Shown here piece after piece: positions 469 through 61,689 of a DNA stretch of 64,000 nucleotides (the first letter of the stretch is position 1; the number at the start of each line of letters is the position of its first letter). The position numbers and the translations under genes are program-made. Below the pieces are notes generated by a model, which ran no database searches, was not told the origin of the DNA, and saw only the letters and a list, made by a program, of their open reading frames with translations. The stretch is from Tubulanus polymorphus. Lineage: Eukaryota; Animalia; Nemertea. The stretch is taken from assembly GCF_964204645.1 (NCBI RefSeq), contig NC_134033.1, positions 15,942,655-16,006,654 of the forward strand, in the 5' to 3' direction.

Positions 469-23773
<23,305 letters not shown>

Positions 23774-51902: not shown

Positions 51903-54802
<2,900 letters not shown>

Positions 54803-55189
54803 CTCTTATCATCAGTTTCATTCATACAACAATAAAATTTGATTGAAAAACAAGTTAAAAGGCAGTATGTCACATGAAAGGATTCATTGAATTGAATTGG
54901 CAACCCAATTCAATTCACTCTTTATTATACTATATTTGCTTCATACCGGGCTAGCTCTAGCGGACTCGTCTCCACTTTGTATCTGCATCCTCATCCTGTA
55001 TATGGCCTCAATGTTACATTTCTGTGGATAACTTGCACCGTTCCCCTGAACACTTAACTTGAGTTTCGCCACGGGGAGCAGCCGGAACAGTATGAGACTC
55101 CGAACAGAAAACTAACATTGAATACATACTTTAAACTCAGTTTTTTAATTCATATCGCATTTTATTAATTCAGAAGAAATAACTACGCG

Positions 55190-55347
55190 GATAACCTGGA
55201 AATTGCGCATCTCGAGTGGCGGCTGGGTTTGAAATATCGCGGGTTCGAACTGCCTTGACCGTCAAGTGCTGCCGCTATATTAAGCGTAGCCGGTGAAAGT
55301 GTGAACTAACTCGCCTTCCACATTAATCGGTTGTCCCGGGTTGTAAA
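55190..55347. promoter_or_regulatory. Bidirectional promoter of NKAP (-) and POLD3 (+)
   Basis: Only about 545 bp separate the NKAP ATG (54802) from the original POLD3 ATG (55348). CpG-rich; candidate minus-strand donor near 55195. Confidence 0.55.
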
Positions 55348-58300
55348 ATGGGGAACGAAAAAGGAGTCATATCAAACTGCAGAGTGCGCACGGGGCCGTG
55401 CGCAGGAGGCCGCGCGCAGGGGGCCGCTTTAATAAAGTGAAAACCACACGATATTATTTACGAAACGGCAATACATATACATAGTAGTATGCGATATGAA
55501 ACTACTCCTACTTCTACCAATTAATCGTCTGCTTCGGCCGTCGGGCCGCGTCTTAAAAGTTTTAATAGTTTTACTTGTCTTCTGCTGGATAGGTGCGCAG
55601 GGGGCCGCGTTTTAAAAGTTTTAATAGTTTTACTTGTCTTCTGCTGGATAGGTGCGCAGGGGGCCGCGTTTTAATAGTGTAAATAGTTTTACTTGTCTGC
55701 TGCTGGATAAGTGCGCAGGGGGCCGCGTTTTAATAGTGTAAATAGTTTTACTTGTCTTCTGCTAGATAGGTGCGCAGGGGGCCGCTATATTTCTATTTGA
55801 TTCTGAACTAATAGTTTTACTAAGTTTTACTTGTCTTCTGCTGGATAGGTGCGCAGGGGGCCGCGGTTTAATAGTTTTACTAAGTTTTACTTGTCTACTG
55901 CTGGATATGTGCGCAAGGGGCCGCGGTTTAATAGTTTTACTAAGTTTTACTTGTCTTCTGCTGGATAAGTGCGCAGGGGGCCGCGTCTTAAAAGTTTTAA
56001 TAGTTTTACTTGTCTTCTGCTGGATAGGTGCGCAGGGGGCCGCGTTTTAAAAGTTTTAATAGTTTTACTTGTCTTCTGCTGGATAGGTGCGCAGGGGGCC
56101 GCGTTTTAATAGTGTAAATAGTTTTACTTGTCTGCTGCTGGATAGGTGCGCAGGGGGCCGCGTTTTAATAGTGTAAATAGTTTTACTTGTCTGCTGCTGG
56201 ATAAGTGCGCAGGGGGCCGCGTTTTAATAGTGTAAATAGTTTTACTTGTCTTCTGCTAGATAGGTGCGCAGGGGGCCGCTATATTTCTATTTGATTCTGA
56301 ACTAATAGTTTTACTAAGTTTTACTTGTCTTCTACTGGATAGGTGCGCAGGGGGCCGCGTTTTAATAGTGTAAATAGTTTTACTTGTCTTCTGCTGGATA
56401 GGTGCGCAGGGGGCCGCGGTTTAATAGTGTAAATAGTTTTACTTGTCTGCTGCTGGATAAGCGCGCAGGGGGCCGCGGTTTAATAGTTTTACTTGTCTTC
56501 TGCTAGATAGGTGCGCAGGGGGCCGCAAGATTTCTATTTGATTCTGAACTAATAGTTTTACTAAGTTTTACTTGTCTTCTGCTAGATAGGTGCGCAGGGG
56601 GCCGCGGTTTAATAGTGTAAATAGTTTTACTTGTCTTCTGCTGGATAGGTGCGCAGGGGGCCGCGGTTTAATAGTTTTACCATAGTTTTACTTGTCTACT
56701 GCTGGATATGTGCGCAAGGGGCCGCGTTTTAATAGTTTTACTAAGTTTTACTTGTAAATTTCTGCATTATTGGTAAAAAATCATCGTTTCGTCTAGCATC
56801 ATATACCAGTTCTCACTTTACAATACCCGGCCCCCTGCGCACCCATTGAGCGCAGGGGGCCGCAGCGGCCCCCTGCGCACTCTGCAGACAGACCCCACTC
56901 CGAAAAAGAAACTGAGATGTTTTTGGAGAATTTGGACGAATTTATCAACGATGAAAACAAAGTTGTAAGTTTAGAACGAGCTTCAATAAAACATAATTAC
57001 GAAACCACCGAAATAAAAACTTGTCAATTTATGGAATTCTGAATTTTTGGGCGCTCCCGCAAATTTTTCACTCAGCAGGGGCTTGTAAACTGGCTTGAAT
57101 TTTATTCTGGGTTGTTGATAATCTCGAGAGAATAGCGCTGAATATGAACTGCGAATAAATTCAAAATATCACGGAAATACCTTGTGTTGATATTGTTTAT
57201 TTATCCGCTACAAAGTTCCGATAAACAATTGGTCGTTACATATCCGGGGCGCCTTAGTGTATAAAAATAACAAGGGATGAAACGGCTTCTGATTTGCCGG
57301 TGACCGTATTGATGCGGTGCAATCCACTGCGCATGTTCAAATTCAGTGCCATTCTCGCGAGATTATCAACAACATCTGGAGAAAAAATCGAACCTAGTTT
57401 ACAAGCCCCTTTGTTCAAATCATGGCGGGGACATGGACTCTAAAACTCATAAGTCCATGATGTTCAAATCGAGTCAAACAAAAAGTAAAATTCACATGCT
57501 CTTTTTAGGTAACCTACAAATGGCTTTGCAGAACTCTAAAAGTACATGTGAACCATGCTAAACGGTAAGTTTTCTCGTCTCGGCGCTGCCCGCTGTTGAC
57601 ACACGACGCTACTCTTGACCCTGGCCACTTTGGTCAGAAAAGTAATGAAGCTTTCGCAATCCGTCATTACTGTGTAGAATAGAATAACTGACTGATATTG
57701 CGTTGGTGTACCCCCGCCCCCTACTGCCCCTGTACCCCCGCCCCCTACTGCCCCTGTACCCCCGCCCCCTACTGCCCCTGTACCCCCGCCCCCTACTGCC
57801 CCTGTACCCCCGCCCCCTACTGCCCCTGTACCCCCGCCCCCTACTGCCCCTGTACCCCCGCCCCCTACTGCCCCTGTACCCGGGGCATCTCTACTTCTGT
57901 CATATTTCTTCATTCCTCTTTCTCTTTCAGAATGCTGGCGAAATTTGTTGAGGAAACTAAGAAAAAGGAAAACGCACCTGCACTGCATATCACCTACTTG
58001 ATCAGCGGCACCAAAACTCACGATGCTAAAACAGTGAGTAAATAAATCTTTATTGAAAATGTTTCTGGGCAACTGAAACGGAATATAATGGGTTAGTTAA
58101 GTTGTATTTAATCGAGATCAATTTTAATTTTGGTGGTTAAGCATGCTCCAACACAGGCTCAGAGATTCTGGAATGTTGACTCTCCACACAATACGCTTAG
58201 AATGTCAATGCTTAAGGCAAAAAAATGATACCTTGTTTCTCCTAATCAGCCGGGTCATTTTGTAAACTGTAATAAAATTTGTAATTGGGTCTGTTATTGT

Positions 58301-61300
58301 TAGCTTGATCGTGATTTAAAAAAATTAATGTACAGTGCCCAATTCGCAAAAAAGATTAAGGTCTAAATTGGATTTAAGATAAATGAAAAAATTAAATCGT
58401 TTTAGGAGTTAAACTTTTTTGTGAAACTGGGCCCAGCTAGGCGGGTCAAAGCTCAGCAGATATATGAGAAACAAGGAATCAATTTTCTTAGCCTAAATTC
58501 GTCAAATTAAAACTGCTCACTTTAGATATAGGTAGTGAAAATTTCAGCTTTTCTATGTGCGTGGAATTGTTGCAATTGTTTTAAGATTATTTATTTATGA
58601 ATAGGTTGAAGAAGTTCGTCTGGTTTGTGGTGAGGAATTACACTCCGTTCAATCGCAGTTCGACTCCATTATAAGCAGTCAAATATACAGCGTTCAACGC
58701 TCGAAACTCAAGGTAACGATTTTTATCGAAAAAGATTTCGTTCATGATTTCTGTAAAAATGTATTATAGCAACGTTCTGCCGGATTTTGGGCTTGAATTC
58801 GACCCTCTATAGTCCCTATATCAGGGAATCAGAAAAATCTAGGAAGGTCAGGGAATTTGAGAAATTTTGAAAAAAAAACTTGAAATCTCGGGGAATTTGG
58901 AAAATGTTATCGACCATGAGTATCTTATTTCTTTATCAGTACGGGATTCTTAATGAATATTTGGGATTCTAAGGGAATTTTGCGTTTATATAACTTGGAA
59001 AACTCAGGGAATTTGTAAATTCGCGGAAAGTGGCCTTCCTGTTAAATCGATATATCTTAATTGATGTTTAGGATGGAAATGCCTTGTTTATTGTCAATTA
59101 CGAGTCCTTCAAAGAGAATATGTTTGATACGCAAAGGTAAGTTGTGCAGTATTTCTCCACTTTCACCCCCGTGTCCAGTTTGTCTATATTTTGGCTTCGT
59201 TTCTAAAAAGATTCAGCGCAATAAAGAATGCAGCAGCCGTTCGCAAATCGAATGAACAGATCAGTCATCTAGAGCAGACGGCAGTTCAGGACATCGCGGC
59301 GAAACGCGAAAAAGCGCAGGTAATTTCTGAAGTCGAGATTCCGAATTCTGAAATGCAAGCATTTCCACATGATGAAATGATGAATGTAAAATCTCACGAT
59401 ATCGTTAAAGGCTGAACGTATTAAAAATGCGCCGAAACCGAAAGGCATCGCGGGTATGTTCGCGAAGGCAGCGACCACCGCTCAACAGAAGAAACAAACC
59501 GAGCAACAGGAAAAAGCTAGTGAACAAACGGTTAAAAAGGTTTGTATTTTAAATCTTTATTCTATCTGAAGAGTTTGTGACCGGAGACAAAGCAAGTAAA
59601 TTCCACTTATGGTATCCACTTGTTCTATCAAGAAGTCTGGACTTAGACTGGTCTTAAGTTGTTAGATTGGTTATAGAACCAAAATGAGCTTAGACTGTTC
59701 GTAAGTTGTTAGATTGGTTATAGAACTGCTGGTCTTAAAACTGGTCTTAAAAGTTGTTAGATTGGCTGTGGAACTAAGATTGTGTCAGACTGGATTTAAG
59801 TAAAAGATTAGCTATGGAACCAATATGGACTTAGACTGGTTTTCTATCTAAGCTTCTACTGTACAACTGGCCTCGGGTCTCAGAAAATATATGCCCAACA
59901 AAGGAATGGTAATTTTTGCATTTATTTTAATGACTCGCGTTTAGAAGGGTTAATAACTCAATTGTATTTGTGTGTGTGTGTTAATAGAAAGAAGAGAAAA
60001 AAGGAATGATGGCGTTTACGGTCAAACCGACGAGCGGGGCGGGGCAGCGTGGGGCCGGGCAGCGCGGGGCCGAGCAACAACGTGAAAAAGAGAACGAGAA
60101 AAATCTACCAAACGACAAAAAGAAATCTGACAACGAGAAACCCGTTGAAAAGTAAAGTACATCGATTCATTTTACGGAAAGTTTTGTACGGTTTGTTATT
60201 TTCGATTACCGGTAATTTTTGCCGTCGTTTCAGGAAAAATAAAGGAAAAAGTAAGAAGTCAGTTCGACGCGGATCGGACCACGAAGAGTCGACTCAGAGT
60301 AAGAAACGTCGTCGAGTTAAAACTGTGATTGAAAGCAGCAGCAGCAGCGAGGACGACGGTGTGTATAATCACCTCTCTACCTCCCTCTATTCCTCCCAAC
60401 CTCTATTCCTCCCCTCTTTCTCTCTCTCTCTCTCTCGCTCCCCCTCCCCCTCCCTCTCCCTCTTTTCCATAACTTCATGTTTATTTTCCACAGGTATCGA
60501 CATAGACGACGATAGTCCAGTTCCTAGTCCGGCCGCAGCAGAACCGCGTGTAACCACACCCCCTCCGCCGGTCGCAGCCGAACCCGAACCTCCGCGAGTC
60601 GAACGGGTTACCGTGACGACGGCAGACGGTAAAGTTAAACGTAGGAAACGAGTGAGGAAGATGGTTCCGGAGACGTTCCTCGATGATGACGGATTCATGG
60701 GTGCGTACCGTTTCCGAAACCCGGGTTCATGGTTGTGATTGAGTTCAAACATCGGAAATCAACTAATTTGAGCTCGTCAAACTTCATTACAAACATAGTT
60801 AAAGATTAGTTCCTTTTCGTTGTTTCTTAACCTGTAAGTCAAGTTCTTACTAGGAACATTATAACCAGGGGCAGAATCATCCAACTGTATCCCTCGTTAA
60901 TCACCAGGGGGCAGTTGCATAGTTATGGCTTAGACTTAAGACCAGTCTAAGACCAACTTAGTTCTGTAGCCAATCTAACAACTTAAGACCAGTGTTAAGA
61001 TTTAAGACCAATTATGGACTTCTTAAGTCACAACTGGCCCCAGGACCCAGTTCTACAGTTGTGAGTTAAGATTTGACTGAAACGAGTAAACTAATGAAAA
61101 TGAGCTGATTCTAACTCTGAATTAAAATCAATGAATACTTTCAATGAGCTTACTCTGAATCAAATCTTGACTCACAACTGTGGAACTGGATCCGATTTCA
61201 TAGTCGAGACTAAAGTCTAAAAGTGGTCTTAAGTCGTGAGACTGGTCGTAAGTTGTCAGATTGGTTAAGATCTAATACCGGTCTTAAATCCAAGTTCCGA

Positions 61301-61689
61301 CAATTAATTGTCACTATGTCGATTATCCACTGGTTAACTCTAAACAACTTTTGACTGGTTGTTTTATTTGATGATGTCACTTCCTTGTGATTTCAGTGAC
61401 GAAGAACAAGTACGTATTTGAATCTTGTACGGACGACTCCGATTTAGAAGACGCGAAAAAACCGGCGAAATCGAATCCAGCTCACACGGCTAAAGCTAAA
61501 ATCGTACGTAAAACTGGACTTTTAAGTCGGGAGCAGGTGGAAAATTTTGCCAAATTCTTAATTCTCGATCTCTATTTGTAGGACGCGAAAGTTAAAGCCG
61601 GCGCCGGGAAAAAGAAAACGTCGCCTAGCGACAAAATGACGAGCAGCAACAAACAAACTTCGTTAATGAATTTCTTTCAGAAAAAATGA
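55348..61689 (+). CDS. POLD3: DNA polymerase delta subunit 3 (p66/Cdc27). Exon 1 (55348-55363 joined to 56909-56964) is interrupted by a transposon; a second in-frame ATG lies at 56917. Further exons: 57509-57564, 57931-58033, 58605-58712, 59072-59136, 59211-59319, 59411-59539, 59988-60151, 60234-60358, 60494-60700, 61397-61503, 61582-61689
   Basis: N-terminus FLENLDEFINDENKV-VTYKWLCRTLKVHVNHAKRML; TYLISG; IYSVQ; KRRKRVRK..ETFLDDDGFMVT; C-terminal PIP box KQTSLMNFF followed by TGA. Confidence 0.93.
55364..56900. mobile_element. 1537-bp non-autonomous TIR DNA transposon (possibly Mutator/foldback-like) with an internal ~59-bp tandem array
   Basis: Direct repeat CGAAAAAG at 55356-55363 and 56901-56908. 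Both ends read GAGT-N9-CTGCAGAGTGCGCA-S-GGGGCCG inward. About 19 internal units contain TGCGCAGGGGGCCGC. No ORF. The superfamily assignment is inference. Confidence 0.9.
57707..57881. repeat. 24-bp C-rich minisatellite, 7 copies, in POLD3 intron 2
   Basis: gtacccccgccccctactgcccct units. Confidence 0.97.

Follow-up and report, generated by a model that had tools for sequence, protein, structure and literature searches.

Why does the public gene model of a replication protein contain an intron that begins with GA, ends with AG and has a transposon for its body? The question is raised by POLD3, the gene for the third subunit of DNA polymerase delta (Pol delta), in the nemertean Tubulanus polymorphus. 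We analysed a window of 64,000 nucleotides from this species (C9:15942655-16006654 of the 268-Mb assembly; positions below are window positions), in which the first coding exon of POLD3 holds an insert of 1,537 base pairs (bp). The explanation that best accounts for the observations, with a probability of roughly 0.78, is that a young non-autonomous cut-and-paste transposon has entered codon 6 of POLD3 and is still unfixed, that the annotated intron is an artefact, and that the insertion-bearing allele, a null or a hypomorph, is sheltered by an intact copy.

A transposon in the first coding exon of POLD3

The insert occupies 55364-56900 and is flanked on both sides by the same 8-mer, CGAAAAAG. 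By sequence comparison, the copies at 55356-55363 on the left and at 56901-56908 on the right constitute a target-site duplication. The left edge of the insert lies 16 nucleotides 3' of an ATG at 55348 that is in frame with POLD3. On the plus strand, the native frame at 55348-55363 reads ATG GGG AAC GAA AAA G, that is, the first five codons (MGNEK) and one base of the sixth, and then enters the insert. On the other side, the right copy of CGAAAAAG is followed by AA ACT GAG ATG TTT TTG GAG, with which the remainder of coding exon 1 begins (56909-56964, plus strand, running to ETEMFLENLDEFINDENKV); this remainder includes a second ATG at 56917, which encodes Met9, and is followed by a GTAAGT donor at 56965. 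The two ATGs share one frame: with 1,545 nucleotides removed, they stand 24 nucleotides (8 codons) apart and read MGNEKETE-M. The element interrupts codon 6 of the POLD3 coding sequence, within the first coding exon. With the insert in place, the ATG at 55348 opens an open reading frame (ORF) of 30 codons (55348-55440, plus strand; MGNEKGVISNC...LIK) that ends in the TGA at 55438-55440. Additionally, a hexamer scan found a single AATAAA or ATTAAA on the plus strand of the element, the AATAAA at 55431-55436, which is a candidate polyadenylation signal.

To decide which ATG is native, two kinds of evidence were considered. The RefSeq protein XP_074657871.1 of T. polymorphus ('uncharacterized protein LOC141910897'), whose model is placed on the same chromosome as the window, maps with 450 of its 450 residues at 100% identity to 13 coding pieces between 55348 and 61686. 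The first five residues are encoded at 55348-55362 and the rest, starting with residue 6, from 56908 on; the N-terminus is MGNEKETEMFLENLDEF (MGNEKETEM). This N-terminus was aligned with those of 22 orthologues, including brachiopod, mollusc, annelid, priapulid, insect and vertebrate proteins. In the alignment, the column of Met9 is a conserved internal hydrophobic position, with Met9 opposite human Leu5, and at least three residues precede the equivalent position in all 22 orthologues. Most of these carry an acidic residue within the two positions preceding the column (DE, DQ or ED), where Tubulanus has TE. A protein with Met9 as its first residue does not occur in the public protein collection. 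Querying transcript-derived short protein fragments with the exon-1 ORF yielded no candidates either, although the length filter of that search deprives the blank of weight. Collectively, the RefSeq start and the orthologue N-termini indicate that the upstream ATG at 55348 is the native POLD3 start, and thus that codon 6 is interrupted.

The identity of the gene is supported at several levels. A phmmer search with exon 3 alone against 1.84 billion proteins returned a single match, XP_074657871.1, and the homologues of that protein across animals are DNA polymerase delta subunit 3 (best E = 9.5e-58). Exon-wise matches to Pfam PF09507 (CDC27/POLD3) reached 26.7 bits (profile positions 19-55), 23.5 bits (328-387) and 18.6 bits (388-423), and in a scan of the whole genome with PF09507 the cut-off was passed at the POLD3 locus only. 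Residues 8-147 align with residues 4-143 of human p66 (E = 1.7e-35; chain B of the p50-p66N crystal structure 3E0J), which suggests that the N-terminal domain that binds p50, the second subunit, is present. Coding exons 2-13 (57509-61689, plus strand), placed by protein mapping and profile matches, are all intact, and a spliced contig (record 26) of the RNA-like run X4 confirms exons 3-8. At the C-terminus, the PIP box QTSLMNFF (61654-61677) fits Qxx(L/I/M)xx(F/Y)(F/Y) and stands three residues before the stop codon at 61687-61689. A genome search found no second copy of the POLD3 flanks in the assembly, where POLD3 is a single-copy gene.

The insert has a recognizable architecture. Its left terminus (55364-55398, plus strand) consists of a GAGT tip, 9 unmatched nucleotides and a 22-nucleotide arm (55377-55398) that is 95% complementary to 56866-56887; the terminal inverted repeats are therefore imperfect, with tips GAGT...ACTC followed by the 9 unmatched nucleotides. 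Three direct subterminal repeats of 14 nucleotides, GTGCGCAGGGGGCC, lie at 55384-55426 (plus strand) and are putative transposase-binding sites. The interior is a tandem array (55543-56755, plus strand) of 19.6 units of 59 bp, with the 17-nucleotide motif GTGCGCAGGGGGCCGCG in every unit, and the subterminal motif itself, GTGCGCAGGGGGCC(GCG) of 14-17 nucleotides, is repeated in each 59-bp unit. In the right terminus (56822-56900, plus strand), which closes with ACTC, the subterminal motif stands twice in inverted and once in direct orientation; together these copies form a hairpin that is predicted to be stable as single-stranded DNA (z = -5.6). Collectively, this anatomy is that expected of a non-autonomous terminal-inverted-repeat DNA transposon with multiplied transposase-binding sites.

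Moreover, the element belongs to a family. When both ends were searched against the element's own genome, about 10 loci turned up with these termini at 98-100% identity, the POLD3 copy being the shortest of them. Eight more copies are complete; their lengths span 1.66 to 7.5 kb, and their boundaries agree to the base, GAGTCATATC...CCCCACTC. A perfect 8-bp duplication flanks the POLD3 copy and six of the eight others; at one more, seven of the eight positions match, and the 7.5-kb copy has none. In one further copy, the duplicated 8-mer sits 4 nucleotides past the right end. The copies differ chiefly in the number of 59-bp units, which ranges from 6 to 71 and is 20 in the POLD3 copy. The insertion pattern is far beyond chance, given the recurrence of the termini at about 10 loci and the separate perfect duplications around six of the other eight complete copies. 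This tandem-repeat-bearing, non-autonomous family in a nemertean is a new family that has recently moved. The eight other sites gave no sign of a preference for the 5' ends of genes or for exons; a scan of the rebuilt empty sites found open frames spanning two of the eight, and these were short (61-78 codons) and unconvincing as exons. Among ORFs of at least 100 amino acids in the four longest copies, none encodes a transposase; these copies contain arrays only, plus one nested reverse-transcriptase ORF.

These results bear out most of an original prediction made from the letters of the window. It had placed a transposon between two in-frame ATGs of the first POLD3 exon, and the duplications, the family of about 10 copies and the reading frames all agree with this. 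The 30-codon ORF ending in TGA at 55440 and the AATAAA at 55431-55436 that it described are both there, and its statement that the downstream exons are intact, PIP box included, is matched by the complete mapping of the 450 residues to QTSLMNFF and the stop codon. The comparison with relatives that it had suggested for the first ATG as the POLD3 start came out in favour of that start, in the RefSeq protein as well as in the 22 orthologues.

The empty site and the annotated intron

Four public runs, in the form of contigs, were placed on window positions 54200-60199. Run X1 is genomic, as its contigs extend over introns and intergenic DNA at an even depth of about 14-20. The first X1 record (1,019 nucleotides) joins 54706-55355 to 56901-57170 with no letter between them and no differences (650 + 270 matching letters). 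It represents the empty site exactly, with a single CGAAAAAG. No k-mer over the empty junction can derive from the filled allele, and hence reads of an empty allele exist. Transposon excision usually leaves a footprint, and the precision of the empty site argues against excision as its origin. The insertion is polymorphic, recent and not fixed. The original prediction had considered a recent, possibly heterozygous disruptive allele and proposed looking for an empty site; the site was found as DNA in X1, from which heterozygosity and disruption may be deduced.

Whose DNA X1 represents was judged from its other contigs. The others listed are identical to the window over about 3.9 kb, and variants at half depth occur at 54476, 54500/1, 58983 and 59053, whereas the contigs of sample S2 differ from the window by 1.6-4%. 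Based on the identity to the window and the half-depth variants, X1 is probably the same animal as the one assembled. Most simply, X1 would stem from a heterozygote, either the assembled animal itself or one very closely related to it, and the empty-site allele is probably the second haplotype of the sequenced animal.

The empty site also offers an account of the annotated intron. The RefSeq model joins 55363 to 56909 and in this way drops the element and one copy of the duplication exactly. Any shift of the cut within the duplicated 8-mer gives ends of GA..AG, GG..AA, CG..TC and similar, and never GT-AG, GC-AG or AT-AC. Ab initio prediction would not make such an intron, so transcript alignments must presumably have supported the junction. 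Since genomic DNA contains the joined form, the economical explanation lies in transcripts of the empty allele: most likely, they were aligned to a reference that bears the insertion, and the intron is an artefact of that alignment. The assembly's reference haplotype of POLD3 is the disrupted one, and the RefSeq model gives the right protein but contains a pseudo-intron that is a presence/absence polymorphism.

Fate of the insertion allele and competing readings

The proposed course of events is as follows. A cut-and-paste transposon inserted into codon 6 of POLD3 and made the 8-bp target-site duplication. The empty-site allele encodes the 450-residue protein annotated by RefSeq (MGNEKETEMFLENLDEF...). 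On the insertion allele, the native AUG would open the dead-end ORF of 30 codons, and POLD3 could be made only by an inefficient start at Met9 (ATG 56917), whose yield should be low except if the element's right end drives transcription. The context of the native AUG is strong (aaaATGG), and a read-through transcript would carry five AUGs upstream of 56917, with every short ORF ending before that position. We infer that the insertion allele is a null or a hypomorph in the heterozygous state, for which a functional Met9 allele is the main rival.

Several observations weigh against this interpretation. Among the run contigs, no contig or read over the filled junction was seen, and the contigs do not give an allele ratio, so that the heterozygosity of the assembled animal is deduced from contig identity and variants, not from read counts. 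The proposed origin of the RefSeq junction likewise follows from the model and the empty site. In the RNA-like run X4, no contig falls on exon 1 or exon 2 of POLD3. Finally, a protein starting at Met9 would retain all invariant residues and the whole stretch aligned with human p66N, and the insertion allele may therefore keep function; its loss of function is accordingly stated here as probable.

This last point underlies the strongest alternative, a tolerated and functional insertion allele, which we regard as a serious possibility with perhaps a quarter of the weight of the preferred explanation. According to it, Met9 would be reached by leaky scanning or reinitiation, or a transcript would start inside or after the right end of the element. 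Met9 takes the position of human Leu5 and nothing structured would be lost, since the alignment with p66 starts at residue 8; the upstream AUGs number only five and their ORFs are all closed before 56917; and rescue from Met9 is compatible with a polymorphic insertion. However, a ribosome would have to pass the strong native AUG with its 30-codon ORF and then four more upstream ORFs over 1.5 kb, and the AATAAA at 55431 lies on the way. Moreover, the public collection holds no protein that starts at Met9, and the placed runs give no RNA support for a downstream transcription start, X4 being devoid of contigs on exons 1 and 2. On balance, a null or hypomorphic allele sheltered by an intact one is favoured over a functional Met9 allele.

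The original prediction had also raised exact removal of the element as a GA-AG intron, that is, an introner-like metazoan intron gain in progress, in which the element and one copy of the duplication would be removed from the pre-mRNA and the RefSeq intron would be real. The RefSeq model on this very assembly makes the exact join of 55363 to 56909. Furthermore, GA has been reported at up to 40% of the 5' splice sites of some introner families, and the target-site duplication of an introner is known to supply it with splice sites (PMC9860276). Nevertheless, the joined form is found in genomic DNA, and the RefSeq model is explained without splicing. Canonical, GC-AG or AT-AC ends are impossible at any cut position within the 8-nucleotide duplication, and GA-AG introns are very rare in animals. 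Introners are spliced out at usable splice sites and occur as many near-identical introns in different genes, whereas here the ends are non-canonical only, the copies number about 10, and no other copy lies clearly in coding sequence (only two of the eight sites fall in frames, of 61-78 codons). Intron birth at this locus is thus very improbable, and this suggestion of the original prediction is not sustained.

Marginally less credible still is cryptic splicing from a donor at 55437 (AAA before the cut, GTGAAA after it) to a CAG acceptor at 56889-56891, a route that had likewise been put forward: the arithmetic holds, as the product is in frame (89 + 25 = 114 nucleotides), free of stops and would place a foreign leader of 38 residues before Met9, but the donor matches the consensus poorly at -1, +5 and +6, the acceptor has no pyrimidine tract, and the junction appears in no contig of the placed runs and in no protein record, which speaks against its use. 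Equally implausible is an assembly artefact in a genome that is truly only empty, for although the sole read-level data at the site show the empty form and no contig of the filled junction is displayed, termini shared with the other copies, together with a perfect 8-bp target duplication, would not arise from a mis-join, and short-read contigs are expected to break at repeat ends, so that the missing contig says little.

Collectively, the case is an ordinary polymorphic insertion, not a new intron being born, and it is a useful caveat for annotation. Such alleles could mislead introner screens that start from annotated introns bordered by target-site duplications. The locus also illustrates genetic load in a wild marine worm: an important replication gene has been struck at its start by a transposon that was active recently, and an intact allele would compensate; in addition, it reveals a small family of tandem-repeat-carrying DNA transposons that has recently been mobile in a nemertean.

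Surroundings of the locus and comparison with known systems

Some further loci concern the transposon family. The largest copy (7.5 kb, C1:2262022-2269522), which lacks a matching duplication, contains the nested reverse-transcriptase ORF, of the non-long-terminal-repeat type and 647 amino acids long, and is probably rearranged. At C10:10915110-10915150, 41 bp of the element's left end survive, with AAAATGAC on one side and AAAATGA on the other; the 8-mer AAAATGAC recurs as the flank of the full copy at C5:22972698-22975622. The remnant may represent a copy with an internal deletion, a footprint or a duplicated site. From C9:7371272 onward (chromosome coordinates), a left end of the element runs directly into Polinton/Maverick-like genes where the 59-bp array is expected, and from C1:19199920 onward an 81%-identical relative of the left end likewise abuts such genes; at both left ends they include B-family DNA polymerase and packaging ATPase motifs. 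No transposase was traced from the related termini at C1:5103468 and C1:19199920. On C5, a hAT-like gene lies 2 kb from a terminus identical at 33 of 35 positions, where no second end was found; it was considered as a candidate autonomous partner but could not be tied to these ends: it has no Pfam match, and its closest copies, 97% identical, lack the terminus.

Upstream of POLD3, an abundant palindromic repeat is represented by a solo arm (55257-55313, plus strand; ACCGTCAAGTGCTGCCGCTATATTAAG...GTGAACTAAC) that includes a TATA-like box and ends 35 nucleotides upstream of the ATG at 55348. The motif of about 57 nucleotides runs ACCGTCAAGTGCTGCCnCTATA..CGGTGAA..GTGAACTAAC, and its 21-nucleotide core pattern, allowing at most 2 mismatches, has 1,090 matches in the genome against 0 for a control pattern. 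Most copies of the motif form palindromic units of about 160 bp, in which two facing arms surround a conserved core (..CTCGCATGCCACAGTAGGAATATT..). The repeat may be a very abundant transposable element of the miniature inverted-repeat type (MITE), a small-RNA/promoter cassette or both, and the solo arm may act as the POLD3 core promoter. Scans for tRNAs and Rfam families over the POLD3 5' region and the palindromic repeat returned nothing relevant. The repeat was also considered as a gene of the spliced-leader or small nuclear RNA type, through which trans-splicing could rescue the insertion allele; this was discarded for want of support and of any Rfam match. Further upstream, the minus strand at 54263-54802 encodes a divergent neighbour, an Arg/Ser-rich protein with Gly/His repeats, whose 5' end faces POLD3 across about 550 bp; it has no Pfam match and reaches a depth of about 280 in X4.

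Within the gene, several introns carry repeats of their own. High-copy repeats with an X1 depth of about 5,000-14,000 occupy 57000-57399 (intron 1) and 58200-58599 (intron 3). The intron 1 repeat is MITE-like, with a 39-nucleotide inverted repeat (57111-57149 and 57335-57373) that is 90% complementary and has 185 nucleotides between its arms. At 57700-57880 (intron 2), outside the listed X1 contigs, lies a perfect minisatellite of about seven 24-nucleotide units, whose two strands translate as TPAPYCPC and GGGGTGAV. Finally, at 59642-59727 (intron 7) depth rises to about 266,000 in X1, where single-copy DNA stands at about 18; it is extreme in the other three runs too, and back-joints are numerous. 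The stretch is part of a short repeat, tandem or interspersed, that is hugely abundant.

Human POLD3/p66, fission-yeast Cdc27 and budding-yeast Pol32, the third Pol delta subunit and also a part of Pol zeta, share with the Tubulanus gene the PF09507 domain, a p66N-like N-terminus, the PIP box and the single copy; relative to human p66, the Tubulanus extension before the first helix is slightly longer (MGNEKETE versus MAD).

With introners (PMC9860276, PMC12130899), the insert has in common that a non-autonomous DNA transposon with a target-site duplication lies in coding sequence and is exactly missing from the gene model, leaving the length of the mRNA unchanged. In contrast to introners, it has non-canonical borders and a tiny copy number, and its 'excised' form is present as genomic DNA.

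As for its superfamily, the element resembles hAT, P and Mutator-like transposons in its 8-bp duplication (7-10 bp in these groups), inverted repeats, clustered subterminal repeats and location at a gene's 5' end, a kind of site preferred by P and Mu elements. The three groups are left open as candidates, as the duplication length would fit each of them. The 8-bp duplication is that of hAT elements, whereas the termini start with GAGTC (GAGTC/GACTC... at the ends) and not with YARNG, and the inverted repeat is broken after 4 nucleotides.

A structural parallel exists for the tandem array. Tandem-repeat-containing MITEs are known in molluscs, and DTC84 of the clam Donax trunculus likewise has inverted-repeat ends around a tandem array whose unit number varies among copies (PMC3879986). 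The Tubulanus element differs from DTC84 in its 8-bp duplication (AA in DTC84), in its size of 1.5-7.5 kb, by which it is not miniature, in its copy number of about 10, and in that each unit of its array repeats the subterminal motif.

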